Shown in pieces: positions 19,880 to 53,112 of a stretch of DNA of 53,112 nucleotides; position 1 is the stretch's first letter; every line of letters starts with the position of its first letter. The notes below the pieces were generated by a model. That model made no database searches and had not been told where the DNA came from. It saw only the letters and a list, made by a program, of their open reading frames with translations. The position numbers were made by a program, and so were the translations under genes. Location: contig MCFE01000610.1 of assembly GCA_002104905.1 (NCBI GenBank), positions 1 through 53,112 on the forward strand. The letters run 5' to 3'. The DNA is from Basidiobolus meristosporus CBS 931.73 (Eukaryota > Fungi > Basidiobolomycota).

Positions 19880-22800
19880 TCCACAGACATGTAACTGAAT
19901 TTCAGCATGTGAATCTTCTTTCTCACAGCAGCCACTGGTTGCTCACTGGCATGTGACTGACAACCATGTTGCTAATTTTTAATTTGACAGCAGCCACTTG
20001 TTGCCTGTGGACATGTGACCAACAAACATGATTCTAATTTAATGTAACAGCAGCTACTTGTTGCTCACAGACATGTGACTAAAAACATACACATTAATGA
20101 TCAGGCTAACAGCAGCTACCAAATGCCCACAAATATGTGACTGAATGTCAGAATGCCAAATTCCTTACTGACATGTGACTGAATTCCAGCATGCCAATTT
20201 TCTTTCTAACGGCTGCCACTGGTTGCTCACAGGCATGTGACTGACAATCATAATGCTAATTTTTAATCTGACAGCAGCTACTGGTTGCTTACAGACATGT
20301 GACTTAAAATCATTATGCTAAATTTAATCTGACAGCAGCCACTTGTTGCCCACAGACATGTGACTAAAAACCATCAGAATATTGATCAGGCTGACAGCAG
20401 CCACCGGTTGCCCACAGACATGTGACTAAATTTCAGCATGCTAATTTTCTTTCCAACAGCAGCCACTGGTTGCCCACAGACATGTGACTGAATTTCAGCA
20501 TGCTAATATTCTTTCTGAGAGCAGCCACTGGTTGCCCACAGACATGTTACTGAATTTCAGCTTGCCAGTTTTCTTACTGACAGCAGCCACTGGTTGCCCA
20601 CAGACATGTGACTGAATTTCAGCTTTCCAGTTTTCTTACTGACAGCAGCCACTGGTTGCCCTGAGACATGTGACTGAATTTTGGCTTGCCAGTTTTTACT
20701 GACAGCAGCCACTGGTTGCCCACAGACATGTGACTGAATTTCAGCATGCTAATTTTCTTTGCAACAGCAGCCACTGGTTGCCCACAGACATGTGACTGAA
20801 TTTTGGTCTGCCAGTTTTGTCACTAACAACAGCCGCTAGTTGCCCTGAGACATGTGACTGAATTTCAGCATGCTAATTTTCTCTGTGATAGCAGCCACTG
20901 GTTGCCCACATACATGTGATTGAATTTCAGCTTGCCAGGTTTTACTGACAGCAGCCACCGGTTGCCCACAGACATGTGACTGAATTTCAGCATGCTAATT
21001 TTCTTACTGACAGCAGCCACTGGTTGCCCACAGACATGTGACTGAATTTCAGCATGCTAACTTTCTTTCTGAGAGCAGCCACTGGTTGCCCACAGACATG
21101 TGATTGAATTTCAACTTGCCAGTTTTCTTACTGACAGCAGCCACTGGTTGCCCACAGACATGTGACTGAATTTCAGCATGCTAATTTTCTTTCTGACAGC
21201 AGCCACTGGTTGCGCACAGACATGTGACTGAATTTCAGCATGCTAATTTTCTTTATGAGAGCAGCCACTGGTTGCCCACAGACATGTGACTGAATTTCTG
21301 CTTGCCAGTTTTCTTACTGACGGCAGCCACTGGTTGCCCACAGACATGTGACTGAATTTCAGCTTGCCAGTTTTCTTACTGACAGCAGCCACTGGTTGCC
21401 CACAGACATGTGACTGAATTTCAGCATGCTAATTTTCTTTCTGAGAGCATCCACTGCTGGCCACAGACATGTGACTGAACTTCAGCTTTCCAGTTTTCTT
21501 ACTGACAGCAGCCACTGGTTGCCCTGAGACATGTGACTGAATTTTGGCTTGCCAGTTTCTACTGACAGCAGCCACTGGTTGCCCACAGACATGTGACTGA
21601 ATTTCAGCATGCTGATTTTCTTTGCGACAGCAGCCACTGGTTGCCCACAGACATGTGACTGAATTTTGGTCTGCCAGTTTTGTCACTAACAACAGCCGCT
21701 GGTTGCCCTGAGACATGTGACTGAATTTCAGCATGCTAATTTTGTCTGTGATAGCAGCCACTGGTTGCCCACATACATGTGATTGAATTTCAACTTGCCA
21801 GGTTTTACTGACAGCAGCCACCGGTTGCCCACAGACATGTGACTGAATTTCAGCATGCTAACTTTCTTTCTGAGAGCAACCACTGGTTGCCCACAGACAT
21901 GTGACTGAATTTCAGCTTGCCAGTTTTCTTACTGACAGCAGCCACTGGTTGCCCACATTCATGTGACTGAATTTCAGCATGCTAATTCTCTTTATGAGAG
22001 CAGCCACTGGTTGCCCACAGACATGTGACTGAATTTCAGCATGATAATTTGTCTTACTGACAGCAGCCACTGGTTGCCCACAGACATGTGATTTCAGCAT
22101 GCTAACTTTCTTTCTGAGAGTAGCCACTGGTTGCCCACAGTCATGTGACTGAACTTCAGCATGCTAATTTTCTTTCTGAGAGCAGCCACTGGTTGCCCAC
22201 AGACATGTTACTGAATTTCAGCTTGCCAGTTTTCTTACTGACAGCAGCCACTTGTTGCCCACAGACATGTGACTACAAGCCATCAGAATATTGATCATAC
22301 TGACAGCAGCCACTGGTTGCCCACAGACATGTGACTGAATTTCAGCATGCTAATTTTCTTTCCGACAGCAGCCACTGGTTGCCCACAGACATGTGACTGA
22401 ATTTCAGCATGCTAATATTCTATCTGAGAGCAGCCACTGGTTGCCCACAGACATATTACTGAATTTCAGCTTGCCAGTTTTCTTACTGACAGCAGCCACT
22501 GGTTGCCCACAGACATGTGACTGAATTTCAGCTTTCCAGTTTTCCTACTGACAGCAGCCACTGGTTGCCCTGAGACATGTGACTGAATTTTGGCTTGCCA
22601 GTTTTTACTGACAGCAGCCACTGGTTGCCCACAGACATGTGACTGAATTTCAGCATGCTAATTTTCTTTGCGACAGCAGCCACTGGTTGCCCACAGACAT
22701 GTGACTGAATTTTGGTCAGCCAGTTTTGTCACTAACAACAGCCGCTGGTTGCCCTGAGACATGTGACTGAATTTCAGCATGCTAATTTTCTCTGTGATAG

Positions 22801-25800
22801 CAGCCACTGGTTGCCCACATACATGTGATTGAATTTCAGCTTGCCAGGTTTTACTGACAGCAGCCACCGGTTGCCCACAGACATGAGACTGAATTTCAGC
22901 ATGCTAATTTTCTTACTGACAGCAGCCACTGGTTGCCCACAGACATGTGATTGAATTTCAGCATGCTAATATTCTATCTGAGAGCAGCCACTGGTTGCCC
23001 ACAGACATGTTACTGAATTTCAGCTTGCCAGTTTTCTTACTGACAGCAGCCACTGGTTGCCCACAGACATGTGACTGAATTTCAGCATGCTAATATTCTA
23101 TCTGAGAGCAGCCACTGATGCCCACAGACATGTTACTGAATTTCAGCTTGCCAGTTTTCTTACTGAAAGCAGCCACTGGTTGCCCACAGTCATGTGACTG
23201 AATTTCAGCATGCTAATTTTCTTTATGAGAGCAGCCACTGGTTGCCCACAGACATGTGACTGAATTTCAGCTTGCCAGTTTTCTTACCAACAGCAGCCAC
23301 TGGTTGCCCACAGGCATGTGACTGAATTTCAGCATGCTAATTTTCTTTATGAGAGCAGCCACTGGTTGCCCACAGACATGTGACTGAATTTCAGCTTGCC
23401 AGTTTTCTTACCGACAGCAGCCACTGGTTGCCCACAGGCATGTGACTGAATTTCAGCATGCTAATTTTCTTACTGTCAGCAGCCACTGGTTGCCCACATA
23501 CATGTGACTGAATTTCTGCTTGCCAGTTTTCTTACTGACAGCAGCCACTGGTTGCCCACAGGCATGTGACTGAATTACAGCATGCTAATTTTCTTTGCGA
23601 CAGCAGCCACTGGTTGCCCACAGACATGTGACTGAATTTCTGCTTGCCAGTTTTCTTACTGACAGCAGCCACTCGTTGCCCACAGGCATGTGACTGAATT
23701 TCAGCATGCTAATTTTCTTTCTGAGAGCATCCACTGGTTGCCCACAGACATGTGACTGAATTTCTGCTTTCCAGTTTTCTTACTGACAGCAGCCACTGGT
23801 TGCCCTGAGACAGGTGACTGAATTTTGGCTTGCCAGTTTTTACTGACAGCAGCCACTGGTTGCCCACAGACATGTGACTGAATTTCAGCATGCTAATTTT
23901 CTTTGCAACAGCAGCCACTGGTTGCCCACAGACATGTGACTGAATTTTGGTCTGCCAGTTTTGTCACTAACAACAGCCGCTGGTTGCACTGAGACATGTG
24001 ACTGAATTTCAGCATGCTAAATTTCTCTGTCATAGCAGCCACTGGTTGCGTACATACATGTGATTGTATTTCAGCTTGCCAGGTTTTACTGACAGCAGCC
24101 ACCGGTTGCCCACCAACATGTGACTGAATTTCAGCATGCTAATTTTCTTACTGACAGCAGCCACTGGTTGCCCACAGACATGTGACTGAATTTCAGCTTG
24201 CCAGTTTTCTTACCGACAGCAGCCACTGGTTGCCCACAGTCATGTGACCAAATTTCAGCTTGTTTTCTTACTGACAGCAGCCACTGGTTGCCCTGAGACA
24301 GGTGACTGAATTTTGGCTTGCCAGTTTTTACTGACAGCAGCCACTGGTTGCCCACAGACATGTGACTGAATTTCAGCATGCTAATTTTCTTTATGAGAGC
24401 AGCCACTGGTTGCCCACAGACATGTGACTGAATTTCAGCATGATAATTTGTCTTACTGATAGCAGCCACTGGTTGCCCACAGACATGTGACTGAATTTCG
24501 GCTTGCCAGTTTTTACTGACAGCAGCCACTGGTTGCCCACAGACATGTGACTGAATTTCAGCATGCTAATATTCTATCTGAGAGCAGCCACTGGTTGCCC
24601 GCAGACATGTGACTGAAATTCAGCATGCTAATTTTCTTACTGACAGCAGCCACTGGTTGCCCACAGACATGTGACTGAATTTCAGCTTGCCAGTTTTTAC
24701 TGACAGCAGCCACTGGTTGCCCACAGACATGTGACTGAATTTCCGCATGCTAATTTTCTTTCTGAGGGCAGCCACTGGTTGCCCGCAGACATGTGACTGA
24801 AATTCAGCATGCTAATTTTCTTACTGACAGCAGCCACTGGTTGCCCACAGACATGTGACTGAATTTCAGCTTGCCAGTTTTTACTGACAGCAGCCACTGG
24901 TTGCCCACAGACATGTGACTGAATTTCCGCATGCTAATTTTCTTTCTGAGGGCAGCCACTGGTTGCCCACAGACATGTGACTGAATTTCAGCATGCTAAC
25001 TTTCTTTCTGAGAGCAGCCACTGGTTGCCCACAGACATGTGACTGAATTTCAGCTTGCCAGTTTTCTTACTGACAGCAGCCACTGGTTGCCCACAGACAT
25101 GTGACTGAATTTCAGGATGCTAACTTTCTTTCTGAGAGCAGCCACTGGTTGCCCACAGACATGTGACTGAATTTCAGCTTGCCAGTTTTCTCACTGACAG
25201 CAGCCACTGGTTGCCCACAGACATGTGACTGAACTTCAGCATGCTAATTTTCTTTCTGAGAGCAGCCACTGGTTGCCCACAGACATGTTACTGAATTTCA
25301 GCTTGCCAGTTTTCTTACTGACAGCAGCCACTTGTTGCCCACAGACATGTGACTAAAAACCATCAGAATATTGATCAGGCTGACAGCAGCCACCGGTTGC
25401 CCACAGACATGTGACTGAATTTCAGCATGCTAATTTTCTTTCCGACAGCAGCCACTGGTTGCCCACAGACATGTGACTGAATTTCAGCATGCTAATATTC
25501 TTTCTGAGAGCAGCCACTGGTTGCCCACAGACATGTTACTAAATTTCAGCTTGACAGTTTTCTTACTGACAGCAGCCACTGGTTGCCCACAGACATGTGA
25601 CTGAATTTCAGCTTTCCAGTTTTCTTACTGACAGCAGCCACTGGTTGACATGAGACATGTGACTGAATTTTGGCTTGCCAGTTTTTATTGACAGCAGCCA
25701 CTGGTTGCCCACAGACATGTGACTGAATTTTGGTCTGCCAGTTTTGTCACTAACAACAGCTGCTGGTTGCCCTGAGACATGTGGCTGAATTTCAGCATGC

Positions 25801-28450
25801 TAATTTTCTCTGTGATAGCAGCCACTGGTTGCCCACATACATGTGATTGAATTTCAGCTTGCCAGGTTTTACTGACAGCAGCCACCGGTTGCGCACAGAC
25901 ATGTGACTGAATTTCAGCATGCTAATTTTCTTACTGACAGCAGCCACTGGTTGCCCACAGACATGTGACTGAATTTTAGCATGCTAACTTTCTTTCTGAG
26001 AGCAGCCACTGGTTGCCCACAGACATGTGACTGAATTTCAGCTTTCCAGTTTTCTTACTGACAGCAGCCACTGGTTGCCCTGAGAAATGTGACTGAATTT
26101 TGGCTTGCCAGTTTTTACTGACAGCAGCCACTGGTTGCCCACAGACATGTGACTGAATTTTGGTCTGCCAGTTTTGTCACTAACAACAGCCGCTGGTTGC
26201 CCTGAGACATGTGACTGAATTTCAGCATGCTAACTTTCTCTGTGATAGCAGCCTCTGGTTGCCCACATACATGTGATTGAATTTCAGCTTGCCAGGTTTT
26301 ACTGACAGCAGCCACCGGTTGCCCACAGACATGTGACTGAATTTCAGCATGCTAATTTTCTTACTGACAGCAGCCACTGGTTGCCCACAGACATGTGATT
26401 TCAGCATGCTAACTTTCTTTCTGAGAGCAGCCACTGGTTGCCCACAGACCTGTGACTGAATTTCAGCTTGCCAGTTTTCTTACTGACAGCAGCCACTTGT
26501 TGCCCACAGTCATGTGACTGAATTTCAGCATGCTAATTTTCTTTATGAGAGCAGCCACTGGTTGCCCACAGACATGTGACTGAATTTCAGCATGATAATT
26601 TGTCTTACTGACAGCAGCCACTGGTTGCCCACAGACATGTGATTTCAGCATGCTAACTTTCTTTCTGAGAGCAGCCACTGGTTGCCCACAGACCTGTGAC
26701 TGAATTTCAGCTTGCCAGTTTTCTTACTGACAGCAGCCACTGGTTGCCCACATTCATGTGACTGAATTTCAGCATGCTAATTTTCTTTATGAGAGCAGCC
26801 ACTGGTTGCCTACAGACATGTGACTGAATTTCAGCATGATAATTTGTCTTACTGACAGCAGCCACTGGTTGCCCACAGACATGTGATTTCAGCATGCTAA
26901 CATTCTTTCTGAGAGCAGCCACTGGTTGCCCACAGACCTGGGACTGAATTTCAGCTTGCCAGTTTTCTTACTGACAGCAGCCACTGGTTGCCCACAGTCA
27001 TGTGACTGAATTTCAGCTTGCTAATTTTCTTTCTGACAGCAGCCACTGGTTGCCCATAGATATGTGATTGAATTTCAGCTTGCCTGTTTTCTTACTGACA
27101 GCAGCCACTATTTGCTCACAGACATGTGACTGAATTTCAGCATGCTAATTTTCTTTCTGATAGCTGCCACTTGTAACCACAGACATGTAACTCAGCTTCA
27201 GCATGCAAAATTTCTTACCAACAGCAGCCTCTTGTTGCCTATAGACATGTGACTGATATTTATAGTGCTAATCTTCTCTCTGACTGCAGTCACCAGTTGT
27301 ACACAGTCATGTAACTAAAAACAATGCATTAATTTTCAGTTCTGACAGCAACCTCAGGATGCCCTTAGACCTGTGATTGAATTTAGCCACCAGTTGCCAA
27401 TAGACATGTGGCCAAAATCATTTTTTTAATTTTCTCACTGTGTACTCTAATGTCAGCCCCTGATTGCCTACAGACATGTGATAACAATCATATAGTTATT
27501 TATCTGTTTTTGACTCTGACAGCAGCCACTGGATATCCACTAAGATGTTGCTGAAACTTAAGATTCTAATTTTGTACAGTCAGTAGCCACTAGTTTTACA
27601 CAGAAATATGACTGAAATTCACCATGCAATCTTTTTTCTGACAGCTGCCATTGGTTGCAAACAAACATGCAACTCAGATCATTTAGTTGAGCCTCTTGCC
27701 GCAGAATCCAACAGCAGCCACTGAATGCCCACAGACATGTCATCAAAAATATTTAGAGAATCTTCTCACTCTTGTCTATAATGGCAGCCACCGGTTACCC
27801 AGAGACATGTTACCAAAAGTATCTTGTTATTTTTCAAATTTGACTGCAGCCATTGGCTGCCTACAGACCAGTGAATGAAATTTACTGTGCTAATTTTAAC
27901 CATGAGAAGCTACTGGTTGTCCAAAAACACATGACCCAAATAAAATAAGTCAAATCTCAAGTCTAAAAGCTGCCGCTTGGTGACCACAGACATGTGACTG
28001 AAATCTAATGTGCCAATTTTCTCATTGAAAGTAGTCACTGGTTGTCCACAGGAAGCCCACAGACCTGCAACTCACATTCACTGTGCTAAGTTTACATCTG
28101 AAAGCAGCTACAGATATAGTACTAACATACAATGAGTTAATCTTCAAATCTGACATCTTCCACTGCCTGCCAGGAACCTATGACAGAACACCTTTAAGTC
28201 AATTTTACAATCAGACAGCTGCTATAGGTAGCATACAAATGTGGGACTGAAAAATTAAGTTAATTTTCTATCCAACAACAGCTACTGGATCCCAGCAGAT
28301 ATGTGACCTATATTTGACAAACAAATTTTAATCTGATGCCAGCTACTGGAATCCTTCAGCTGTATGCCAAAAAATTATCATATAATTTACACAAACAATG
28401 TGAAGCCACCGGATATTTACAGTATCATGTGTCTGCCCACTCTTAGATGA
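19880..28450 (+). repeat. Satellite array I, 60-62 bp monomer (homogeneous ~20340-27150, about 110 monomers; degenerate flanks)
   Basis: Tandem CTGACAGCAGCCACTGGTTGCCCACAGACATGTGACTGAATTTCAGC plus a variable linker (atgctaattttc.., ttgccagttttc..). Measured periods are 60-62 bp. Confidence 0.97.
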
Positions 28451-30725
28451 CTAAAAACTTTGCAAATACCTATGAAACTCAGAATAGGGACTTGGTCCTC
28501 ACAGAGATATCACTGAAACTCTCAATGCTAAGTATTGTTAAATGCTGGCAGCCTTGGAGTACCAATAGTCTTAAGATTTAGTATTGCAGCCCTTACTTTT
28601 TTGCTGACTGACTGTTACTTAAAATTAATAATGCATGTAAGAGCACCTACTAGAAAGCCCTACAGCATATACAAATTGCCATGTTAATCTTCTTTTCAAA
28701 CTGAGTGCAGCCACCTGGTACAGTCATATGACTAGAATTGAGAACTCCAATTTTTCAAGCTGAAGGTATACACTGGATGCCTATAGTTATGTGGTTGAAA
28801 TTGCAACACTAGCTTCTCTGAGACTGAGAGCATTCTCCAGATGCCCACAAACATGAGGTCCAGAAGAATACAGCACATTTGCTAACAAAATCAGAGTCAC
28901 CAACAGATGCCCTCAGAGTATATTTTGAGTATTCTGGAACATGAACACCTCACAAGGTAGGATTGTAATTGTGAAGCTCTTTATTCTAACACAATGTGAG
29001 CAGTTACTATATGCCTGCTGACAGGAACTTTGAAATGACCTGAGTAGCTGTTGTTTACAAACTTTTGGTAGCTATCTGATGCTCCCAAAATATTGGCTTG
29101 GTATTGAACAAACTATGAGTATAATATCACATAAACAAGTACTGAGTGCCCATAGGCCTTTTCTTGTTAGTCCTGTATGTGATTGAATAGCCCAAAGAGT
29201 GCTTCCAGATTTCATGTTACATTGATGCTGTATACTTTGTAAGTGGCTGCTTAGTACTGGATGCCCAAAGGCCTTTACTTGTTAGCCTGTAACTCAAATA
29301 ACATCCACAGTGCCAACAGCCAATGGATTTGTAGAAAAGTGTGTATAGAGGTTGTTGAAACCTCTTTTTGTGACAAACTATGAGCAGCCACAAGATGCCA
29401 ACATATGTGATGATTAAAATCTGTAAAGCTTGAAATTACAACTGTGTTTCCAAAACCCTGAATATGAGACATACTTAGACATGTGAGCAGTCACAGAATA
29501 CCATACAGGAGATGTCCAGGTATGGAACAACTGTTTTGTGATATATATCACAAACACTGTGCACTCATGTAGCTGATACCTGGAATATCAGCATCTCATA
29601 TGTTTCAATAATGTTTGCACTGGTTGAGTTGCCCAAAAAGTGCATCTAGATTTTGTGTTACATTGGTGCTGTATACTTTGTAAGTAGCTACTCAGTGTCT
29701 ATGGTAAATATGTGCTTGGCAAACTGTGTGCAGCCAAGCAACTTTTACACAATAAATCATAAAAACTCCATAACTCAATAGCCTACTAGTGTAAACTGCC
29801 AATGGGTGCCTGCAGGGTTGCGGCTGATATAACAAAAGCTGTGTCTCCTGAGCAATAGTAAGCAGTCAATGCATGTTTGCCAGGTAGATGCCAAAAGTTG
29901 CAACATCCGTATTGGACAATATGGCATGTAGACTCTAGCTGCCCACAAAATGCTTTCTGATTATATAACAATAATGCTACATAGCAAATGAACACCTACA
30001 AGATGATATCAGTTTCTAGTTAATAGCATAACCTGCAAATGCAGTTACTTGTCAATAGCTAACAGATACTCCCAGGGGAATTGCTGAAAATCAATTGGCT
30101 GTGTACGTTTCTGAATGCTAAGCAAATCTTGTATTTACACAAAGTGGATTTGTAATGGCCTATGTATTTCCTGATAGCCCTTCAGGTTGGAATATGTATA
30201 CTGAATATGGTCCTGCCAAGTTCCCACAGATTACTTGCCTGTTTCCCTACAGCTTAGATACATTCTATTAGGCAAGTGGCTGCTAGCAAGCTGAATCAAT
30301 ACAAGCCCCACAACTGCTTTGTAGTCTGATAAGCAGTGAGCAGCCACTGAACTCTTATGGGGTATTGGTTGACACTCCCATATACTGTCAATGTTGAAAG
30401 CCATAGATGCTATGTAAGAGCAGAATATAAGTGCAATTGCTTGATGATTCTAAGTTCTTTTCACAGTTACATAACTGGATTACATCCCTAAATGTAAGTA
30501 GCCACTGTATTTCTACACAATCAGTTCTAAAATTGCACTGGCCATGTTACTTGATCTATTGTACACAGCTACCAGGCACCCACTGAAGCGTTTTGAAATT
30601 GTTTCACTTTGTACTCTAACCTATTTCCTGTACTGCCTCTGCTGCCTGCAAAGTGTGTATCTACCCAACTATCAAGCACTGGAACACTACAGGGTGTAAG
30701 CAAGGATTGAGTTCAATTTATTGAT

Positions 30726-31410
30726 GTATTCATTTTCAATAACAGTAATAGGATGGAGCATAATTAAGGCTTGGCAAAATGCCAGGTTGCTTAGGGATAA
30801 ACTGTGAGCAGTATGACAAATGTGGACTAATAGGGGTCATTTATGTGATATAGAAAATATGATTTCCCACAACAGACAAAAGTAGCATAATACTCAGATT
30901 ACAAAGAACAGCCATTGACCAAAAAGCAAGTGACGCTAGCAAGTAGAGCCAATACAAGCCCCATAATTGCTTGTATTCACTTGCACTTACAGTAATAGGA
31001 TGGTGCACAATTAGGGCTTGGCAAAATGCCTGGTTGCTTGGGGATAAACTGTGAGTGGTATGACAAATGGGGGCTAATAGGGGTCATGACAGTGATATAG
31101 AAAATATGATTTCCCACACCAGACAAATGCAGCATAATACTCAGATCACAAAGAACAGCCATAGACCAAAAAGCAAGTGGCTGCTAGCAAGTAGAGCCAA
31201 TACAAGCCCCATAATTGCTTGTATTCACTTGCACTTACAGTAATAGGATGGTGCACAATTAGGGCTTGGCAAAATGCCAGGCTGCTTGGGGATAAACTGT
31301 GATTGGTATAACAAATATGGGTTGATAGGGGTGATTAGAGTACTATTGACAATTTGATTGCCCACACTAGACAAAAGTGGCATAACACTCAGATTACAAA
31401 GAGCAGCTAT
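30726..31410. repeat. Tandem repeat, 247-248 bp unit x ~2.8
   Basis: Units start gtattca at 30726, 30973 and 31221. A partial older copy lies at ~30270-30325. Confidence 0.9.
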
Positions 31411-39299: not shown

Positions 39300-42200
39300 G
39301 TATGTATATTACTGTTGCAAGTCCTTCAATAAGAGTTGTAGAGGAATAGGGGGTTTAGATAGAATTCTATTCAAAAATCCTGAACTGATCTTTGTTGAGG
39401 TTCCAGCATCTGCTTCTATACACTTTGCCAGCTCAACTGTTGACCAATGGTACTTCCTGATATAGGTTATGGAAGATGACTCATTGTTTGCATCATTGTC
39501 ACCCAAATAAATCTTTATGATTCAGCATTGTCAGTAAGTCTTTCAAGCTTAAGTCTGTGTCTATAAGTTAGATTTTCTGGGATATTTCCTTGTTTGTCTA
39601 TTTGATGGTCAGTTGCAAATTGACATTCTCATGATCTTGAGTGGTCCAGTCTATTGTGGCTCAAACTTGTTCTGAATATTGTTTCTTAGCAATACAAAGT
39701 TCCCAACTCCCAAAGCCTCTGGTGATTAGTCTTATCAAATCTCTCCCTAATGTTTTCTGCATTTTTAGAGACATTGGCCTGTGTCTCCTGATGTTTTGTT
39801 CCAATTATATGTGTCTACTAGGCAGACCAAGCTCACTCTACAAGTTGTAAGTGTGAGATCTCCTGCAATCCATGATTCACATCCATACACTAAGTAAAAT
39901 GTCAATAGTTGGGATGTGTTATCATCTTAACTTTGCAGGCAAACATTGCTTGGACAATACCTTTGTCCCATTTGCTTACAGCTCCATTTTTGTACTTGGT
40001 CAGTATTTTTCCACAAAATCCATTAAACCACTCAGTGTATGTATTAGTTCTGGAGTAATATTCAAAAGTTTTCAAAAGTTTGATCTGCAGCATTTCATGT
40101 TAGGCTTTCTATGATTCTGCAACAATATATGCTTGTCTATCAGTTGAGATTCACTCAGTGCATCCAAGCTTCATCAGGATCTGATAATAAATGAAACTTT
40201 CAACTTCTTATTCATTGGCTATTTGGTGGCATGGTCAATAGGCATTAGAATCTCCTAATTGCATTTTCTAGTAATGGGCAGTCATCCAATAAAGTTGATA
40301 CCCCAAGCAACATTGGAGCATTAGGCAATAGGGCTTTCACCATTGATTTGGTTTAGTGTCTTATCCTGTACTACATATTTGTTAGCTTCATCCTGGATAA
40401 TTTTCTTGATATGTTCATCCACCTGATCAGGATTGGCTTTGTCTTCCAAGTGCCTTGGTAATAGGCTGGGCCAATCTGATTCATTAATCAGATAGAGCTG
40501 CACAACTTGTTCTAGTCTTGATAAGGCCTCAGTAGTAGTGATATTTTTCCCAGGGAAGAAGACTATCTCCAGGTCAAATTGTTGAATGTAGTCACCCCAT
40601 CTTGCTGTTTGTATGGATGGTACCCTCTGTATAAATGTACTTGAGTCAGGGGTGATCAGTCCCCACAGTGCACTTGACTCTTTCAATGTAGCTTGCCATG
40701 TCTTTAGGCAGAATATCATGGCAAGCATCTCCTGCTCATCCACTGGATAGTTTTGTTACACCTAGTTCAGTTTCTTGGACTCAAAAGCAACCAGGTATCC
40801 CTTTCTCTCATGCACTTGGCTCAGGACTGTGCCAAATGCATAATCTGAGGCTTCTATGCAGCAATTGAGCTCTTTGTGAAAATTACATAATCATGAGCTT
40901 GGCAGCTTACAAAGGTTATTGGTGAGCATCTGTAAAGCAGTATCACAGGCAATACCCCACTAGGAGGTGTATTTTGTGAGGATATGAGTCAAAGGTGCTG
41001 TAATACATGCAAAAGACTTAACAAATCTACAGTAAAACAAAACTATTACAAGAAATGATCTGAGCTCTGAAATGCTATGAGGCTGCTTTGCAATCTTAAT
41101 AACTGCCACTTTCTTGTGGTTCTGTGTCACTGCCTTGCTAGTCATTATGTATCTCAGATACTCAACATGTTCCATGAAGAACTCACACTTTGCTGGCCTA
41201 GCACAAGGCTAATTTTGCTGAACATGGTGGCTCCATTGAGTTGGTCCAAGGCTCATCAATCTGTTATATAAAGTACTTATTCCTCACAGTAACTGAGCCA
41301 AGAGCTCTGTAGTCAGTGCACATCCTAAGTATTCTATCCTTTTTTTTCACAAAAAGCACTAGCGCTCCCCAAGGTGACTTGCTGGGCCTGATGTATTCTT
41401 GTTCCAATAGTTGATCAATATACCTCTTCATCTCTTCCAAACCCAGTGGACATATCCTCTAAGGTGCCTTTCCCACTGGGGGCTATATCCTGTGTCAATA
41501 GCATGATCCACATCCTTGACTGTTGATATGCTTTAAAGTTAATCAGGGAACATATCTGAATACACCTTTGAAAGAGTTTGGATTTTCTGGGGAACTGGGG
41601 AAGAGGAATAAGCATCTAACACCACCATGAGAAACATTTGTGTATCTTTCCTAAGTGCTCTACAGTACTGAATATTTCTAATTTCACTTGTGCCCAATAC
41701 ACCGGTGCTGACCAAGTTGAACTCCAGTATGGCAGGTAGTGGGTCATAGGTCAGGTTGCCTTTTTGGCTCTGATTGGCATGGGTGCTGCAATTGATTGAT
41801 GGAATATGTTCAAATAGCCATGTTTTTCCAAGTACTAGCTCATACTTGCAGTTTCCATATGATCAGCTGTTGTGACTGAAGTTAATTTGTCAGATCCAAA
41901 TTTGATTCCTGCTTTCCAGGTAAAATGCTCTGACATTTACATGTGTGATGCCCTTGAGTCATTCATGATTTTAACAAGTACTCCATTGCTTACTTCATAC
42001 TAGTATAACAGTTTCTCTGAGCCTGAAGTCATCTGGGATAAGTATTCTTCTGTCATATAAAAGGTGAGTTCTGAGTCTTCTTCAAGTTCATCTTTCACTT
42101 TACTCTATTCTTGGCGTCAGTATGCTCAAAGATTCCAATGGTAATATTGCAAGATGGTCCCATCCAGGTGGCAATTGAAACCTAGTCCTTTCTTCTTGCA

Positions 42201-43339
42201 TTCTTGTGGGCTAGGATTCTTCTGCATAGGGCCTGTTTTCATTGGCACTGCTTCTGACTGTCTTCTTTCATAGTAGTTTTAGCTTATCTGATTAGTAAGT
42301 GTTTTCCAACTCTAAACATAGCTGATCCACAGCTGATGGCAGACTTGGTGGCTTCTTCAATAGCTTGAGGTCTCTGATAATTTTCTCCCTTATGACTTTT
42401 TTCTTCCAGCCCATCAGTGAAGTATTCAACTTGATAAAGGGGGTCTATTCTTTCAGTCTGTTCAAGTAAATGTATACATCATGAATGTATTCCTGTACCA
42501 TTGCTTTCTGTCAGAGTGGTTTCAGCTTCCTTCCTAGCAATGTCTACTGATATGGAGGCTCAAAAGTATCCTAAATTTCTGATGCAAAATCATACTAGGC
42601 AGATATAGCTGAGCATCCCATCATATTGGCTGATCTAATCTTGTTGGGATGCCATTATAGATACATTTGTCAACTAAGTGGCTGCATATTGCAGCTTACT
42701 TTCTGGCGCAATTCATTCAGCCTCAAAAGCTTGCTAGTTTAAAAGAGCCAAGTTCTTATGTTTTCATTGACTCAACCATGGTACTGGTTGACCTTCACAC
42801 TAAAGTTGCTTCGGAAAGTGTTTTGTCATGGTAGTCATTCCTAGTTCCAGCTGCCTGAGGATCTAGAGTAACTGCTGGTGTTGGGCTGAGATTTGCTGTG
42901 TAGCACTCTTAATTTTCTGACATCTCAGGAGAGGCTTCTCTATTTTCAGCTGGGAGGTTGCTGGTTGCTGCTGATACCAATGTTACAAGTATTGAAATAA
43001 GAGTTGTTGAAGAAGAGGGAGTTTGGCTATTATTATACTTGCTGAAGCTTCAGCTCATCTTTATTAAGGTCCCAGCAGCTCTTTAAATAAATTTTGCCAC
43101 TACAATTTATCTATAATTCTATTTCCTGATGTAGTATGTGGCTGATGACTTATTTGATTGCATCATCATCACATAGTTATATCATATCTAATATATAAAT
43201 TTCCATCTGATGAGAATCTTCTGATTCACCTGCTGACTGATATTACTGATTTGATAGAGAATATTGATTTGACAATTGGTTAAACATAAAACTAGTTGTT
43301 GTGACTAAAAACATGTCAAACTTGCGCATTCTGGTGTCA
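39300..43339 (-). mobile_element. Decayed Ty3/gypsy element 2, same LTR family (RT core deleted, no 3' LTR seen)
   Basis: 5' LTR 43339-42981, PBS-like TGGTATCAG at 42979-42971, RT start ([24 protein letters not shown]), RNase H (ORF 40321-40743), integrase pieces and a GPY/F-like module (~39600-39700). The left end is approximate. Confidence 0.88.
42981..43339 (-). repeat. 5' LTR of element 2 (~359 bp)
   Basis: The reverse complement aligns with the element 1 LTRs; it starts TG and ends ttgtaaca. Confidence 0.75.
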
Positions 43340-43399
43340 GATTATAGCATTACCAATCAGGTATAGGCCTGTAAAAAGGCTTCAATACTTTAACTGCTA

Positions 43400-46300
43400 A
43401 ATCTGCATAATGGTTTTGAGTCACATGCCTGTAGGCAAACAGTGATTGCGGACATCCTGATAATTCATGTGGTGGCTTTTAGTTACATGGCTGTGAGCAA
43501 CCAGTGGTTGCGGTCAAAAAGAAAATTGGTGTGCTGTCATTCAGTCACATATCTGTGGGCAATTGTTAGCTGCTGTCAGCCTGATCATGAATTTGATTGC
43601 TTTTGGTCACATGCCTGTGGGCAACCAGTAGCTGCTGACAAAATGCAAATTGGCAAGCTCAAATCAGTCACATGTCTGTGGGCAAAAAGTAGCTGCTATC
43701 AGCCTAATTATAGCAAAATGGTTTTTAGTCACATGTTTGTGGGCATGAAGTGGCTGCTGACAGCCTGATTATAGCGTTATGGTTTTGAGTCACATTTCTG
43801 TGGGCAACAAGTGGCTGCTGTCAGCCTAATTATAGGGTATTGGTTTTTAGTCACATGTCTGTGAGCAACATGTGGCTGCTGTCAGCCTGATTCTAGCATG
43901 ATGGTTTTTAGTCACATGTCTGTGGGCAACCAGTAGCTGCTGTCAGCCATATTTTAGCGTAATGGTTTTAAGTCACATGTCTGTGGGCAACAAGTGGCTG
44001 CTGTCAGCCTGATTCTAGCGTGATGGTTTTTAGTCACATGTCTGAGGGCAACCAGTGGCTGCTGTCAGCCTGATTTTAACATGAGGGTTTATGTCACATT
44101 TCTATGGTCAACAAGTGGCTGCTGTCAGCCTAAATATAGCATGATGCTTTTAAGTCACATGTCTGTGGGCAACCAGTGGCTGCTGTCAGCCTGATTCTAG
44201 CGTAATGGTTTAGTCACATGTCTGAGGGCAACCAGTGGCTGCTGTCAGCCTGATTTTAACGTGATGGTTTAGGTCACATGTCTGTGGGCAACCAGTGGCT
44301 GCTGTCAGCCTAATTCTAACGTGATGGTTTTTAGTCACATGTCTGTGGGCAACCAGTGGCTGCTGTCTGCCTGATTCTAACGTAATGGTTTAGCCACATG
44401 TCGGTGGGCAACAAGTGGCTGCTGTCAGCCTAAGTATAGCATAAGGGGTTTTAAGTCACATGTTTGTGGATAACAAGTGGCTGCTGTCAGCCTGCTTCTA
44501 GCGTAATGGTTTTAGTCATATGTCTGAGGGCAACCAGTGGCTGCTGTCAGCCTAAATATAGCATGATGGTTTCAAGTCACATGTCTGAGGGCAACATTTG
44601 GCTGCTGTCAGACTGATTCTAGCGTGATGGTTTTTAGTCACATGTCTGAGGGCAACCAGTGGCTGCTGTCAGCCTGTTTTTAACGTGATGGTTTAGGTCA
44701 CATGTCTGTGGGCAACAAGTGGCTGCTGTCAGCCTAAATATAGCATGATGGTTTTAAGTCACATGTCTGTGGGCAACCAGTGGCTGCTGTCAGCCATATT
44801 TTAGCGTAATGGTTCTAAGTCACATGTCTGGGGCAACATTTGGCTGCTGTCAGCCTGATTCTAGCGTGATGGTTTTTAGTCACATGTCTGAGGGCAACTA
44901 GTGGCTGCTGTCAGCCTGATTTTAACGTGAGGGTTTATGTCACAAATTTGCATGCAGAAATTCAGTCACATGTCTGTGGGCAACCAGTGGCTGCTGTCAG
45001 CCTAATTAAAGCGTAATAGTTTTTAGTCACATGTCTGTGGGCAACAAGTGGCTGCTGTCAGCCTGATTCTAGCGTGATGGTTTTTAGTCACATGTCTGAG
45101 GTCAACAAGTGGCTGCTGTCAGCCTAAATATAGCATGATGGTTTTAAGTCACATGTCTGTGGGCAACCAGTGGCTGCTGTCAGCCTGATTCTAGCGTAAT
45201 GGTTTAGTCACATGTCTGAGGGCAACCAGTGGCTGCTGTCAGCCTGATTTTAACATGATGGTTTATGTCACAAATTTGCATGCAGAAATTCAGTCACATG
45301 TCTGTGGGCAACAAGTGGCTGCTGACAGCCATATTTTAGGGTATTGGTTTTTAGTCACATGTCTGTGGGCAACATGTGGCTGCTGCCAGCGTGATTCTAG
45401 CATGATGGTTTTTAGTCACATGTCTGAGGGCAACCAGTGGCTGCTGTCAGCCTGATTTTAACGTGAGGGTTTATGTCACAAATTTGCATGCAGAAATTCA
45501 GTCACATGTCTGGGGGCAACCAGTGGCTGCTGTCAGCCTAATTATAGCGTAATAGTTTTTAGTCACATGTCTGTGGGCAATAAGTGGCTGCTGTCAGCCT
45601 GATTCTAGCATGATGGTTTTTAGTCACATGTCTGAGGGCAACCAGTGGCTGCTGTCAGCCTGATTTTAACGTGAGGGTTTATGTCACATTTCTGTGGTCA
45701 ACAAGTGGCTGCTGTCAGTAAGAAAACTGGCAAGCTGAAATTCAGTAACATGTCTGTGGGCAACCAGTGGCTGCTGTCAGCCTGATTCTAGCGTAATGGT
45801 TTAGTCACATGTCTGAGGGCAACCAGTGGCTGCTGTCAGCCTGATTTTAACGAGAGGGTTTATGTCACAAATTTGCATGCAGAAATTCAGTCACATGTCT
45901 GTGGGCAACAAGCGGCTGCTGTCAGCCATATTTTAGGGTATTGGTTTTTAGTCACATGTCTGTGGGCAACATGTGGCTGCTGCCAGCGTGATTCTAGCAT
46001 GATGGTTTTTAGTCACATGTCTGAGGGCAACCAGTGGCTGCTGTCAGCCTGATTTTAACGTGAGGGTTTATGTCACAAATTTGCATGCAGAAATTCAGTC
46101 ACATGTCTGTGGGCAACCAGTGGCTGCTGTCAGCCTAATTATAGCGTAATAGTTTTTAGTCACATGTCTGTGGGCAATAAGTGGCTGCTGTCAGCCTGAT
46201 TCTAACGTGATGGTTTTTAGTCACATGTCTGAGGGCAACCAGTGGCTGCTGTCAGCCTGATTTTAACGTGAGGGTTTATGTCACATTACTGTGGTCAACA

Positions 46301-49300
46301 AGTGGCTGCTGTCAGCCTAAATATAGCATGATGCTTTTAAGTCACATGTCTGTGGGCAACCAGTGGCTGCTGTCAGCCTGATTTTAACGTGAGGGTTTAC
46401 ATCACAAATTTGCATGCAGAAATTCAGTCACATGTCTGTGGGCAACCAGTGGCTGCTGTCAGCCTAATTATAGCGTAATAGTTTTTAGTCACATATCTGA
46501 GGTCAACAAGTGGCTGCTGTCAGCCTAAATATAGCATAATGGTTTTAAGTCACATGTCTGTGGGCAACCAGTGGCTGCTGTCAGCCTGATTCTAGCGTAA
46601 TGGTTTAGTCACATGTCTGAGGGCAACCAGTGGCTGCTGTCAGCCTGATTTTAACGTGAGGGTTTATGTCACAAATTTGCATGCAGAAATTCAGTCACAT
46701 GTCTGTGGGCAACAAGTGGCTGCTGTCAGCCATATTTTAGGGTATTGGTTTTTAGTCACATGTCTGTGGGCAACATGTGGCTGCTGTCAGCATGATTCTA
46801 GCGTGATGGTTTTTAGTCACATGTCTGAGGGCAACCAGTGGCAGCTGTCAGCCTGATTTTAACGTGAGGGTTTATGTCACATTTCTGTTGTCAACAAGTG
46901 GCTGATGTCAGCCTAAATATAGCATGATGCTTTTAAGTCACATGTCTGTGGGCAACCAGTGGCTGCTGTCAGCCTGATTCTAGCGTAATGGTTTTAGTCA
47001 TTTGTCTGAGGGCAACATTTGGCTGCTGTCAGCCTGTTTTTAACGTGATGGTTTAGGTCACATGTCTGTGGGCAACCAGTGGCTGCTGTCAGCCTGATTT
47101 TAACGTGATGGTTTAGGTCACATGTCTGTGGGCAACCAGTGGCTGCTGTCAGCCTAATTCTAGCGTGATGGTTTTGAGTCACATGTCTGTGGGCAACCAG
47201 TGGCTGCTGTCTGCCTGATTCTAACGTAATGGTTTAGCCACATGTTGGTGGGCAACAAGTGGCTGCTGTCAGCCTAAGTATAGCATAAGGGGTTTTAAGT
47301 CACATGTTTGTGGATAACAAGTGGCTGCTGTCAGCCTGCATCTAGCTTAATGGTTTTAGTCATTTGTCTGAGGGCAACATTTGGCTGCTGTCAGCCTGTT
47401 TTTAACGTGATGGTTTAGGTCACATGTCTGTGGGCAACAAGTGGCTGCTGTCAGCCTAAATATAGCATGATGGTTTTAAGTCACATGTCTGTGGGCAACC
47501 AGTGGCTGCTGTCAGCCTGATTCTAGCGTGATGGTTTTTAGTCACATGTCTGAGGTCAACAAGTGGCTGCTGTCAGCCTAAATATAGCATGATGGTTTTA
47601 AGTCACATGTCTGTGGGCAACCAGTGGCTGCTGTCAGGCTGATTCTAGCGTAATGGTTTAGTCACATGTCTGAGGGCAACCAGTGGCTGCTGTCAGCCAG
47701 ATTTTAACGTGAGGGTTTATGTCACAAATTTGCATGCAGAAATTCAGTCACATGTCTGTGGGCAACCAGTGGCTGCTGTCAGCCTAATTATAGCGTAATA
47801 GATTTTAGTCACATGTCTGTGGGCAACAAGTGGCTGATGTCAGCCTAAATATAGCATGATGCTTTTAAGTCACATGTCTGTGGGCAACCAGTGGCTGCTG
47901 TCAGCCTGATTCTAGCGTAATGGTTTAGTCACATGTCTGTGGGCAACCAGTGGCTGCTGTCAGCCATATTTTACCGTAATGGTTTTAAGTCACATGTCTG
48001 GGGCAACATTTGGCTGCTGTCAGCCTGATTCTATATGTCACAAATTTGCATGCAGAAATTCAGTCACATGTCTGGGGGCAACCAGTGGCTGCTGTCAGCC
48101 TAATTATAGCGTAATAGTTTTTAGTCACATGTCTGTGGGCAATAAGTGGCTGCTGTCAGCCATATTTTACCGTAATGGTTTTAAGTCACATGTCTGGGGC
48201 AACATTTGGCTGCTGTCAGCCTGATTCTAGTGTAATAGTTTTTAGTCACATGTCTGTGGGCAATAAGTGGCTGCTGTCAGCCTGATTCTAGCGTGATGGT
48301 TTTTCGTCACATGTCTGAGGGCAACCAGTGGCTGCTGTCAGCCTGATTCTAGTGTAATGGTTTAGTCACATGTCTGAGGGCAACCAGTGGCTGCTGTCAG
48401 CCTAAGTATAGCATAAGGGGTTTTAAGTCACATGTTTGTGGATTACAAGTGGCTGCTGTCAGCCTGCTTCTAGCTTAATGGTTTTAGTCATATGTCTGCG
48501 GGCAACATTTGGCTGCTGTCAGCCTGTTTTTAACGTGATGGTTTAGGTCACATGTCTGTGGGCAACAAGTGGCTGCTGTCAGCCTAAATATAGCATGATG
48601 GTTTTAAGTCACATGTCTGTGGGCAACCAGTGGCTGCTGTCAGCCTGATTCTAGCGTAATGGTTTAGTCACATGTCTGTGGGCAACCTGTGGCTGCTGTC
48701 AGCCATATTTTACCGTAATGGTTTTAAGTCACATGTCTGTGGGCAACATTTGGCTGCTGTCAGCCTAATTATAGCGTAATAGTTTTTAGTCACATGTCTG
48801 TGGGCAACAAGTGGCTGCGGTCAGCCTGATTCTAGCGTGATGGTTTTTCGTCACCTGTCTGAGGTCAACAAGTGGCTGCTGTCAGCCTAAATATAGCATG
48901 ATGGTTTTAAGTCACATGTCTGTGGGCAACCAGTGGCTGCTGTCAGCCTGATTCTAGCGTAATGGTTTAGTCACATGTCTGAGGGCAACCAGTGGCTGCT
49001 GTCAGCCTGATTTTAACGTGAGGGTTTATGTCACAAATTTGCATGCAGAAATTCAGTCACATGTTTGTGGGTAACAAGTGGCTGCTGTCAGCCATATTTT
49101 AGGGTATTTGTTTTTAGTCACATGCCTGTGGGCAACATGTGGCTGCTGTCAGCGTGATTCTAGCGTGATGGTTTTTAGTCACGTGTCTGAGGGCAACCAG
49201 TGGCTGCTGTCAGCCTGATTTTAACCTGAGGGTTTATGTCATAAATTTGCATGCAGAAATTCAGTCACATGTCTGTGGGCAACCAGTGGCTGCTGTCAGC

Positions 49301-52300
49301 CTAATTATAGCTTAATAGTTTTTAGTCACATGTCTGTGGGCAATAAGTGGCTGCTGTCAGCCTGATTCTAGCATGATGGTTTTTAGTCACATGTCTGAGG
49401 TCAACAAGTGGCTGCTGTCAGCCTAAATATAGCATGATGGTTTTAAGTCACATGTCTGTGGGCAACCAGTGGCTGCTGTCAGGCTGATTCTAGCGTAATG
49501 GTTTAGTCACATGTCTGAGGGCAACCAGTGGCTGCTGTCAGCCAGATTTTAACGTGAGGGTTTATGTCACAAATTTGCCTTCAGAAATTCAGTCACATGT
49601 CTGTGGGCAACAAGTGGCTGCTGTCAGCCTGATTCTAGCGTAATGGTTTAGTCACATATCTGAGGGCAACCAGTGGCTGCTCTCAGCCTGATTTTAACGT
49701 GAGGGTTTATGTCACAAATTTGCATGCAGAAATTCAGTCACATGTCTGTGGGCAACCAGTGGCTGCTGTCAGCCTAATTATAGCGTAATAGTTTTTAGTC
49801 ACATGTCTGTGGGCAACAAGTGGCTGCTGTCAGCCTGATTCTAGCGTGATGGTTTTTAGTCACGTGTCTGAGGGCAAGCAGTGGCTGCTGTCAGCCTGAT
49901 TTTAACCTGAGGGTTTATGTCACAAATTTGCATGCAGAAATTCAGTCACATGTCTGTGGGCAACCAGTGGCTGCTGTCAGCCATATTTTAGGGTATTTGT
50001 TTTTAGTCACATGCCTGTGGGCAACATGTGGCTGCTGTCAGCGTGATTCTAGCGTGATGGTTTTTAGTCACGTGTCTGAGGGCAACCAGTGGCTGCTGTC
50101 AGCCTGATTTTAACCTGAGGGTTTATGTCACAAATTTGCATGCAGAAATTCAGTCACATGTCTGTGGGCAACCAGTGGCTGCTGTCAGCCTAATTATAGC
50201 TTAATAGTTTTTAGTCACATGTCTGTGGACAATAAGTGGCTGCTGTCAGCCTGATTCTAGCATGATGGTTTTTAGTCACATGTCTGAGGTCAACAAGTGG
50301 CTGCTGTCAGCCTAAATATAGCATGATGGTTTTAAGTCACATGTCTGTGGGCAACCAGTGGCTGCTGTCAGGCTGATTCTAGCGTAATAGTTTAGTCACA
50401 TGTCTGAGGGCAACCAGTGGCTGCTGTCAGCCAGATTTTAACGTGAGGGTTTATGTCACAAATTTGCCTTCAGAAATTCATCACATGTCTGTGGGCAACA
50501 AGTGGCTGCTGTCAGCCATATTTTAGGGTATTGGTTTTTAGTCACATGTCTGTGGGCAACATGTGGCTGCTGTCAGCGTGATTCTAGCGTGATGGTTTTT
50601 AGTCACATGTCTGAGGGCAACCAGTGGCTGCTGTCAGCCTGATTTTAACGTGAGGGTTTATGTCACAAATTTACATGCAGAAATTTAGTCACATGTCTCT
50701 GGGCAACAAGTGGCTGCTGTCAGCCATATTTTAGCGTAATGGTTTTAAGTCACATGTCTGTGGGCAACAAGTGGGTGCTGTCAGCCTGATTCTAGCGTGA
50801 TGGTTTTTAGTCACATGTCTGTGGTCAACAAGTGGCTGCTGTCAGCCTAAATATAGCATGATAGTTTTAAGTCACATGTCTGTGGGCAACTAGTGGCTGC
50901 TGTCAGCCTGATTCTAGCGTAATGGTTTAGTCACATGTCTGAGGGCAACCAGTGGCTGCTGTCAGCCTGATTTTTACGCGATGGTTTAGGTCACATGTCT
51001 GTGGGCAACAAGTGGCTGCTGTCAGCCTAACCCTAAGTCACATGTTTGTGGGCAACAAGTGGCTGCTGTCAGCCTAATTATAGGGTATTGGTTTTTAGTC
51101 ACATGTCTGTGAGCAACATGTGGCTGCTGTCAGCCTGATTCTAGCATGATGGTTTTTAGTCACATGTCTGTGGGCAACCAGTAGCTGCTGTCAGCCATAT
51201 TTTAGCGTAATGGTTTTAAGTCACATGTCTGTGGGCAACAAGTGGCTGCTGTCAGCCTGATGCTAGCGTGATGGTTTTTAGTCACATGTCTGAGGGCAAC
51301 CAGTGGCTGCTGTCAGCCTGATTTTAACATGAGGGTTTATGTCACATTTCTATGGTCAACAAGTGGCTGCTGTCAGCCTAAATATAGCATGATGCTTTTA
51401 AGTCACATGTCTGTGGGCAACCAGTGGCTGCTGTCAGCCTGATTCTAGCGTAATGGTTTAGTCACATGTCTGAGGGCAACCAGTGGCTGCTGTCAGCCTG
51501 ATTTTAACGTGATGGTTTAGGACACATGTCTGTGGGCAACCAGTGGCTGCTGTCAGCCTGATTTTAACCTGAGGGTTTATGTCACAAATTTGCATGCAGA
51601 AATTCAGTCACATGTCTGTGGGCAACCAGTGGCTGCTGTCAGCCTAATTATAGCGTAATAGTTTTTAGTCACATGTCTGTGGGCAATAAGTGGCTGCTGT
51701 CAGCCTGATTTTAACGTGAGGGTTTATGTCACATTTCTGTGGTCAACAAGTGGCTGCTAAGTATAGCATAAGGGGTTTTAAGTCACATGTTTGTGGATAA
51801 CATGTGGCTGCTGTCAGCCTGCTTCTAGCGTAATGGTTTTAGTCATTTGTCTGAGGGCAACATTTGGCTGCTGTCAGCCTGTTTTTAACGTGATGGTTTA
51901 GGTCACATGTCTGTGGGCAACCAGTGGCTGCTGTCAGCCTGATTTTAACGTGATGGTTTAGGTCACATGTCTGTGAGCAACCAGTGGCTGCTGTCAGCCT
52001 AATTCTAGCGTGATGGTTTTGAGTCACATGTCTGTGGGCAACCAGTGGCTGCTGTCTGCCTGATTCTAACGTAATGGTTTAGCCACATGTTGGTGGGCAA
52101 CAAGTGGCTGCTGTCAGCCTAAGTATAGCATAAGGGGTTTTAAGTCACATGTTTGTGGATAACAAGTGGCTGCTGTCAGCCTGCATCTAGCTTAATGGTT
52201 TTAGTCATTTGTCTGAGGGCAACATTTGGCTGCTGTCAGCCTGTTTTTAACGTGATGGTTTAGGTCACATGTCTGTGGGCAACAAGTGGCTGCTGTTAGC

Positions 52301-53112
52301 CTAAATATAGCATGATGGTTTTAAGTCACATGTCTGTGGGCAACCAGTGGCTGCTGTCAGCCTGATTCTAGCGTGATGGTTTTTAGTCACATGTCTGAGG
52401 GAACCAGTGGATGCTGTCAGCCTGATTTTAACGTGAGGGTTTATGTCACAAATTTGCATGCAGAAATTCAGTCACAAGTCTGTGGGCAACCAGTGGCTGC
52501 TGTCAGCCTAATTATAGCGTAATAGTTTTTAGTCACATGTCTGTGGGCAATAAGTGGCTGCTGTCAGCCTGATTCTAGCATGATGGTTTTTAGTCACATG
52601 TCTGAGGTCAACAAGTGGCTGCTGTCAGCCTAAATATAGCATGATGGTTTTAATTCACATGTCTGTGGGCAACCAGTGGCTGCTGTCAGCCTGATTCTAG
52701 CGTAATGGTTTAGACACATGTCTGAGGGCAACCAGTGGCTGCTGTCAGCCTGATTTTAACGTGAGGGTTTATGTCACAAATTTGCATGCAGAAATTCAGT
52801 CACATGTCTGTGGGCAACAAGTGGCTGCTGTCAGCCATATTTTAGGGTATTGGTTTTTGGTCACATGTCTGTGGGCAACATGTGACTGCTGTCAGCGTGA
52901 TTCTAGTGTGATTGTTTTTAGTCACATGTCTGAGGGCAACCAGTGGCTGCTGACAGCCTGATTTTAACGTGAGGGTTTATGTCACATTTCTGTTGTCAAC
53001 AAGTGGCTGATGTCAGCCTAAATATAGCATGATGCTTTTAAGTCACATGTCTGTGGGCAACCAGTGGCTGCTGTCAGCCTGATTCTAGCGTAATGGATTA
53101 GTCACATGTCTG
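43400..53112 (-). repeat. Satellite array II, ~59-62 bp monomer, inverted relative to array I, about 155-160 monomers, runs off the window end
   Basis: GTCACATGTCTGTGGGCAACCAGTGGCTGCTGTCAGC (reverse complement of the array I core) plus a 22-25 bp linker family (ctgattctagcgtgatggttttta and variants). Confidence 0.97.

Follow-up and report, generated by a model that had tools for sequence, protein, structure and literature searches.

The two long tandem arrays carried by contig MCFE01000610.1 of the fungus Basidiobolus meristosporus CBS 931.73 (assembly GCA_002104905.1) probably belong to one satellite family with a unit of 61-62 bp, in which a 37-bp segment, the core, is constrained and each array has been taken over by a subfamily of its own. 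The complete contig of 53,112 bp was analysed, and this whole stretch is called the window below. The reading is built on the anatomy of the arrays, the homology of their monomers, the differential conservation of the core and the remainder of the monomer (the linker), the amplification of multi-monomer blocks and the sequence context, all of which are direct observations. Both arrays have the properties of satellite DNA. They are long and run head-to-tail, have no coding or known RNA function, are homogenised in an array-specific manner and lie in a heterochromatin-type sequence context.

Array I lies on the plus strand at 19880-28855 and has about 136 monomers with a 62-bp unit in a profile search with nhmmer; the matches run from 19880 to about 28270, and decayed copies can be traced to about 28855. 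Array II lies on the minus strand at 43399-53112, has 153 nhmmer monomers with a 61-bp unit and ends where the contig ends. The two arrays are oppositely oriented and about 15 kb apart. Tandem Repeats Finder (TRF) reports 116 copies of period 62 at 20170-27316 with 83% matches and about 150 copies of period 61 at 43666-53112, the latter with higher-order periods of 121, 147, 181, 208 and 416 bp. An earlier sequence-only reading of this DNA had placed two tandem arrays of about 270 monomers here, and TRF and nhmmer agree with it on the location and, at about 270-290 monomers for both arrays together, on the approximate copy number. All monomers are built on a common 37-bp core, CTGACAGCAGCCACTKGTTGCCCACAGACATGTGACT, and the linker behind it has a length of 20-26 nt, in most cases 22-25. 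Read with the core first, the array I monomer is CTGACAGCAGCCACTGGTTGCCCACAGACATGTGACT and then the linker GAATTTCAGCATGCTAATTTTCTT(T/A), and the array II monomer has this 37-mer too, its position 16 being T or G, and then the linker AAAAACCATCACGCTAGAATCAGG. The linker is AT-rich relative to the core, which is GC-richer and partly palindromic. Monomer lengths range from 57 to 63 bp, and it is the linker part that carries the variation in length.

Core and linker are conserved to different degrees. The mean column entropy is 0.45 bits in the core and 0.78 bits in the linker of array I, and 0.28 and 0.64 bits in array II (Mann-Whitney p ~1e-4). The minor-base fraction per column is 0.079 in the core and 0.186 in the linker of array I, and 0.061 and 0.167 in array II. 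Mean identity within array I is 0.90 for the core and 0.76 for the linker; within array II the values are 0.905 and 0.725. Between the arrays the core identity is 0.889, equal to the level within an array, while linker similarity, at 0.36, cannot be told from that of shuffled linkers (0.33 +/- 0.08). The consensus monomers of the two arrays differ at 1 of 37 core positions and at 13 of 24 linker positions (Fisher p = 4e-6), so that by both measures, 0.889 against 0.36 and 1/37 against 13/24, the core has the character of a conserved box. The same difference is seen in old monomers. Degenerate monomers at the array edges score 0.79 in the core and 0.64 in the linker, although the linker score is the best of many comparisons. 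In the decayed right flank of array I (27317-28855, plus strand) divergence rises and nhmmer E-values weaken; here the core is still recognisable (0.5-0.8) and the linker mostly is not (best linker 0.3-0.7).

The data support the view that the 37-bp core is held constant by a process that is not neutral and that works through which variants spread. Its constancy is judged to be non-neutral because the core is as alike between the arrays as within them while the linkers are almost saturated. The sequence-only reading had argued that the core is constrained, and had named beforehand, as an outcome that would speak against this, an equal entropy of core and linker once CpG sites are excluded. The only consensus CpG sits in the type-II linker, that of array II, where it is polymorphic with TpG. 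After the CpG-variable columns were dropped the contrast was the same, with the core still lower (p ~1e-4). In the sense of non-neutral constancy the argument is upheld, as the between-array core identity equals the within-array identity, the edge monomers keep their core and the exclusion of CpG has no effect. The same reading had called the core nearly invariant. This overstates its constancy, since the shared 37-mer is present without change in only 23 of 132 cores in array I and 17 of 131 in array II (13-17%), and there are 75 distinct core sequences in array I and 60 in array II.

Why has one part of the monomer stayed alike in two arrays when the other part has not? Changes were counted along a minimum spanning tree of the monomers, so that an amplified variant counts once. 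Overall, the per-site ratio of core to linker events is 0.69-0.71 in array I and 0.55 in array II. On the edges that join nearest relatives (at most 3 differences) the ratio is 1.25 in array I and 0.77 in array II, and neither value is significantly different from 1. Variants below 5% frequency give ratios of 1.04 (array I) and 0.56 (array II), and singleton variants give 3.1 and 0.86. Common variants, those with a frequency of at least 5%, are 3-4 times denser in the linker than in the core. The recent ratios are near 1, and therefore the mutation input is roughly uniform and the bias lies only in which variants spread. The most frequent change in array II is C>T.

The linkers form a small number of recurrent classes, about 4-5 in array I and 6-9 in array II, and the recurring linker variants described by the sequence-only reading were thus found again in each array. 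That reading had also treated the linkers of the two arrays as two families that do not obviously align. For the main consensus forms this is correct, as their alignment is weak (10-14 of 25 positions; p 0.02-0.7) and their similarity of 0.36 is at the shuffled level. However, a chain of intermediates joins the type-I and type-II linkers; no step in it scores below 0.68, whereas the highest score among 3000 shuffles was 0.62. The most important of these intermediates come from 20206-20328, in the left edge of array I. Linker positions are also conserved in their own right, with a common GCTA block and A/T runs at 0.95-0.99, which does not agree with the description of the linker as a free spacer. 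The linkers are diverged forms of one ancestral linker, and the whole monomer is homologous between the arrays. Nor are the linkers interchangeable, as had been proposed, for in addition to being homologous they are linked to variants of the core. Core haplotypes are tied to linker class with Cramer's V of 0.63 and 0.67 (p below 1e-20), and therefore each monomer was duplicated as one unit, not put together from modules.

The copying of units is also visible in the map of the arrays. In the left edge of array I (19880-20390, plus strand), which opens abruptly within a core, there are about 8 older monomers whose linkers are mixed, namely type I, old type II (...GATCAGG) and the intermediates mentioned above. 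The body of array I (20391-27316, plus strand) has about 111 monomers of 62 bp, each with the core and a type-I linker of class B, A, F, I or L, arranged in irregular multi-monomer blocks according to TRF, the entropy profile and the block map; sequence matching finds exact consensus monomers in this array, for example at 20699-20760 on the plus strand. At the inner edge of array II (43399-43702, minus strand) older monomers again occur, and type-I-like and old type-II-like linkers alternate, so that TRF gives a period of 124 at 43475-43705 and the edge is a 124-bp dimer of alternating types. Linker types are therefore mixed at the edges of both arrays. The body of array II (43703-53112, minus strand) has about 127 monomers of 59-62 bp with type-II linkers of classes C, D, E, G, H, J, K, M and O, together with 19 units of 86 bp. 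All 19 of these units share one build and carry remnants of a type-I linker inside array II. In the unit at 44915-45000 on the minus strand, for example, the core is followed first by 20 nt of type-I linker, next by GTGACA, the 6 nt with which a core ends, and finally by an H-class type-II linker. The 86-bp unit is a type I-type II dimer from which 38 bp are missing. Blocks of several monomers recur, such as BBAAFBIBFBBAB and CDHOKCGHH in the letters of the linker classes. Because the two arrays differ in subfamily and in block structure, they are not an assembly artefact produced by inverted duplication.

A single monomer of array II, at 51026-51072 on the minus strand, is 47 bp long and carries TAGGGTTAGG in place of its linker, which brings TTAGGGTTAGG, a telomere-type sequence, next to the core. 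No other such match occurs in the window, and the number expected by chance is 0.01. CCCTAA is present in the J-class linkers nearby, so the addition of telomere repeats and a small deletion or inversion are equally likely.

The sequence-only reading had described the linker as constrained in length and the period of about 61 bp as placing the cores about six helical turns apart. The period of 61-62 bp corresponds to 5.8-5.9 turns at 10.5 bp per turn, the lengths vary between 57 and 63 bp, and the 86-bp units, of which 19 copies were amplified within array II, correspond to 8.2 turns and break the phase. We saw no evidence for a selected phase from core to core, and copying alone gives constancy of length.

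It is proposed that the ancestral arrays mixed or alternated both types of linker, of which the edges of the arrays would keep a trace and the 86-bp units a fossil. Blocks of several monomers would later have been amplified, through unequal exchange or segmental duplication, until type I filled array I and type II filled array II. Mutations would enter core and linker at similar rates, but variants of the 37-bp segment would rarely spread; the AT-rich remainder of 22-26 bp would drift and would be homogenised only locally. If the 37-bp segment binds a protein, arrays that lose it would be disfavoured. The 37-bp segment may well be a landing site for a sequence-specific chromatin protein, and although we hold this with some reserve it is the most likely reason for the constancy. 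From its context the satellite could also be a candidate pericentromeric or centromeric repeat, since the locus is CpG-depleted, rich in retrotransposons and of heterochromatin type and lies beside a gene cluster; this is a tentative assignment. It is doubtful whether one can go further and take the 37-bp segment as the recognition module of a kinetochore or heterochromatin protein and the 61-bp satellite as the centromeric DNA of Basidiobolus.

Several points stand against the preferred reading or limit it. Recent mutations are not depleted in the core, and no classical purifying selection on single monomers was seen. The single-strand folding of monomers, dimers and the core alone is not above that of shuffled sequences (z -0.1 to -1.4), and for this reason a hairpin or cruciform role for the repeat was dropped. 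Matches to short motifs, such as the octamer GTCACATG in the core, would serve as leads and not as tests. A scan of metagenomes with a 32-nt pattern of the core gave 0 matches, although these collections hardly cover fungi and the blank says little. A second metagenome scan, for the end of a core, a gap of 18-32 nt and the start of a core, gave one match, in a GC-rich, non-repetitive and bacterial-looking contig, which was judged to be due to chance.

The constraint on spread is compatible with selection for protein binding and fits equally with biased homogenisation that has no function for the host. In the latter case recombination or gene conversion would start in the GC-richer, partly palindromic core and proceed in short tracts, and the linker would diverge in each array. 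That new mutations are equal in core and linker and that only their spread differs agrees with such a process, as does the equality of core identity between and within the arrays, which is expected if the arrays exchange cores. It has also been proposed that conserved motifs promote the rearrangement of satellites in nematodes (PMC3694981). However, core haplotypes are tied to linker classes and there is little sign of an independent exchange of cores, the arrays are 15 kb apart in opposite orientation, and in the decayed monomers at the edges, where homogenisation has ceased, the core is still better preserved than the linker. Biased homogenisation is considered rather unlikely, but it is the main rival. 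A simpler possibility is that the linker just mutates faster, as it is AT-rich, contains A/T runs and one CpG and varies in length. The TpG polymorphism of this only consensus CpG, in the type-II linker, and the prevalence of C>T in array II point in this direction. On the other hand, the most recent differences, those between nearest relatives, have the same density in both parts of the monomer (ratios of core to linker 1.25 and 0.77, neither significantly different from 1), and the contrast does not change when CpG columns are left out, so mutational heterogeneity on its own is a very unlikely explanation.

The origin of the monomer has to be considered as well. It could derive from a repeat of a mobile element, and the core would then be the present or former binding site of a transposase, possibly a domesticated one. 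The arrays lie amid transposon debris, core-like 44-nt pieces (60-82% alike) occur outside the arrays at 17596-18127, and the CENP-B box and its relation to pogo offer a precedent (PMC3694981). Within the window, however, the monomer has no significant match outside the arrays and the decayed flank (E of at least 0.08), and no transposase gene was seen there, which makes a transposon origin improbable. The sequence-only reading had compared the arrays to repeat-spacer arrays, and a true repeat-spacer system would have a fixed repeat and acquired, interchangeable spacers. The layout of conserved and variable parts of fixed length is the only point of agreement, and it is superficial. The linkers are few, recurrent, homologous to each other and linked to core variants, identical cores make up 13-17%, and the contig is eukaryotic, with spliced genes and LTR (long terminal repeat) retrotransposons. 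A repeat-spacer system is hardly credible here, and the cores and linkers already refute it. Of the explanations considered, a single satellite family with a constrained 37-bp segment remains the preferred one.

The core contains GTCACATG, which matches the pattern RTCACRTG of centromere DNA element I (CDEI) and of E-boxes. The CDEI element of budding-yeast point centromeres is bound by Cbf1. The octamer fits this consensus and is exact in 69% of the monomers of array I and 78% of those of array II, with zero exact copies elsewhere in the window. The wider pattern RTCACRTG matches 104 times in array I and 127 times in array II, compared with 7 times in the 19.9 kb that precede array I (1-19879). 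Unlike a budding-yeast centromere, however, the satellite has no CDEIII-type element and no single-copy CDEI-II-III layout, and an 8-bp match is weak evidence. The CDEIII-type sequence TCCGAA has 0 matches in the arrays. A point centromere of the budding-yeast type was rejected because the octamer is present without TCCGAA and is repeated in tandem hundreds-fold, without the single-copy tripartite arrangement. The CENP-B box pattern TTCG-N4-A-N2-CGGG has 0 matches in either array. The core also carries TGACAG within the near-palindrome CTGACAG, and an imperfect dyad GCAGCCA-N-TGGTTGC. As to coding content, 4 open reading frames (ORFs) of at least 75 aa touch the arrays (81-132 aa), and one of them begins just before array II. 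No Pfam or homologue signal was obtained for the ORFs inside the arrays; a protein word search with the 132-aa ORF that runs through array I gave 22 candidates, none of which obtained a score. Scans of the satellite for Rfam families and tRNAs found no family and no tRNA.

The satellite family of this fungus is undescribed, and the pattern of a conserved box with a divergent remainder is known from other satellites. The closest precedent is found in Meloidogyne, where repeats associated with CenH3 have monomers of 45-83 bp that are 56-73% alike and share a fully conserved box of 19 bp (Despot-Slade et al. 2021, PMC8097292). The units of M. hapla are 61 and 84 bp long (PMC8097292). Both systems have short monomers (45-83 bp in Meloidogyne, 61-62 and 86 bp here), several repeat families of low similarity that share one conserved box, and monomeric as well as mosaic arrays that are often located at scaffold ends. 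They differ in the box, which is GC-rich, fully conserved and forms a stable dyad in the nematodes, whereas here it is 37 bp long, about 90% conserved and without a significant fold. In Meloidogyne, moreover, the link to CenH3 comes from chromatin immunoprecipitation (ChIP) and immuno-fluorescence in situ hybridisation (immuno-FISH), and the box is conserved across species; the organism here is a fungus. A second comparison is with the CENP-B box of primate alpha satellite and with the CENP-B-box-like motifs that nematode satellites carry where monomers join (Mestrovic et al. 2013, PMC3694981). In these cases too a short motif that is bound by a protein or promotes rearrangement is kept in fast-evolving monomers, and simple and higher-order arrays coexist. 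The core pattern of the CENP-B box is absent here, however, and the monomer is 61 bp as opposed to 171 bp. A related case among fungi is Mucor circinelloides, whose mosaic centromeres have a centromere-specific motif of 41 bp (Navarro-Mendoza et al. 2019, bioRxiv 10.1101/706580). There the motif is present once per centromere, within a core of about 1 kb, which is different from hundreds of tandem copies.

Basidiobolus centromeres or satellites were not described in any paper that the literature searches turned up. To our knowledge, long satellites with short units are uncommon in sequenced fungi. We also know of no satellite-based, sequence-marked centromere described in an early-diverging fungus, and the literature searches found no counter-example. 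If the 61-bp satellite were centromeric, it would be the first such centromere in this part of the fungal kingdom, and the CDEI-type octamer GTCACATG would hint that centromere binding of the basic helix-loop-helix (bHLH)/Cbf1 type predates the point centromeres of budding yeast. The 37-bp segment, which is alike between two independently homogenised arrays, provides a concrete probe for chromosomal location and for binding proteins. The satellite is also a clean and small case for telling selection from biased homogenisation, because the input of mutations is uniform and their spread is not. Should the segment be neither bound nor centromeric, the family would be one more ordinary satellite.

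The arrays lie in a domain that is different in composition from the rest of the contig. From 12500 to 53112 the observed/expected (o/e) ratio of CpG is 0.05-0.21 with an excess of TpG/CpA, and this domain holds both arrays and the transposon debris. The gene-bearing part, 1-12500, has small genes and a CpG o/e of 0.69. The depletion of CpG with an excess of TpG/CpA is what cytosine methylation leaves behind over a long time. Two degenerate copies of a gypsy-type LTR retrotransposon, about 70% identical to each other by self-BLAST, are located between the arrays. The first is a pol fragment at 35034-37730 on the plus strand with many stops and an RNase H domain at 37424-37690 (Pfam RT_RNaseH, E = 1.3e-18). 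The second, at 40578-43323 on the minus strand, is inverted, has a weak RT_RNaseH match at 40324-40755 (E = 0.002) and ends 76 bp from array II. The RT_RNaseH matches were found in pieces taken from stop to stop; Pfam searches with the short ORFs of the retroelements gave nothing. CpG depletion and LTR-retrotransposon debris together make this a heterochromatin-type sequence context beside a gene cluster.

Other repeats occur in the neighbourhood of the arrays. The stretches 15357-15848 and 19401-19873 form an inverted pair of repeats of about 480 bp with 72% identity, and the second ends 7 bp before array I; it is possibly the end of a transposon that cut array I short. Further upstream, about 570 bp at 16916-17482 match their own reverse complement with 69% identity and have the form of a decayed palindrome. 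At 17596-18127 there are three copies of a 44-nt piece, 282 and 206 bp apart, that reads CTGACAGCTGCTAGTGGATGCTC... on the minus strand. These pieces resemble the first 24 nt of the core (19-20 of 24-26 positions; profile E-values only 0.08-0.2); they could be an ancient remnant of the satellite or an element from which it arose. Between the arrays, at 30725-31412, lies another tandem repeat, of 248 bp, with 2.8 copies and 88% matches. As 248 is 4 x 62 it was considered as a decayed tetramer of the satellite, and this was rejected since it has no significant match to the monomer profile.

In the gene-bearing part, an ATG-initiated ORF of 333 aa at 11429-12430 on the plus strand has an internal 15-aa repeat rich in proline, serine and glutamine (...PSQANS...) and is without a Pfam match. 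Tandem repeats of 45/90 bp at 11709-11876 lie inside this ORF, which is located at the border between the CpG-normal and the CpG-depleted DNA. Several paralogous small ORFs on the minus strand (149-156 aa) with 18-bp repeats coding for Gly/Tyr are found at 1226-9700, where they sit in segmental duplications of 2.7 kb and 1 kb with 86-89% identity.

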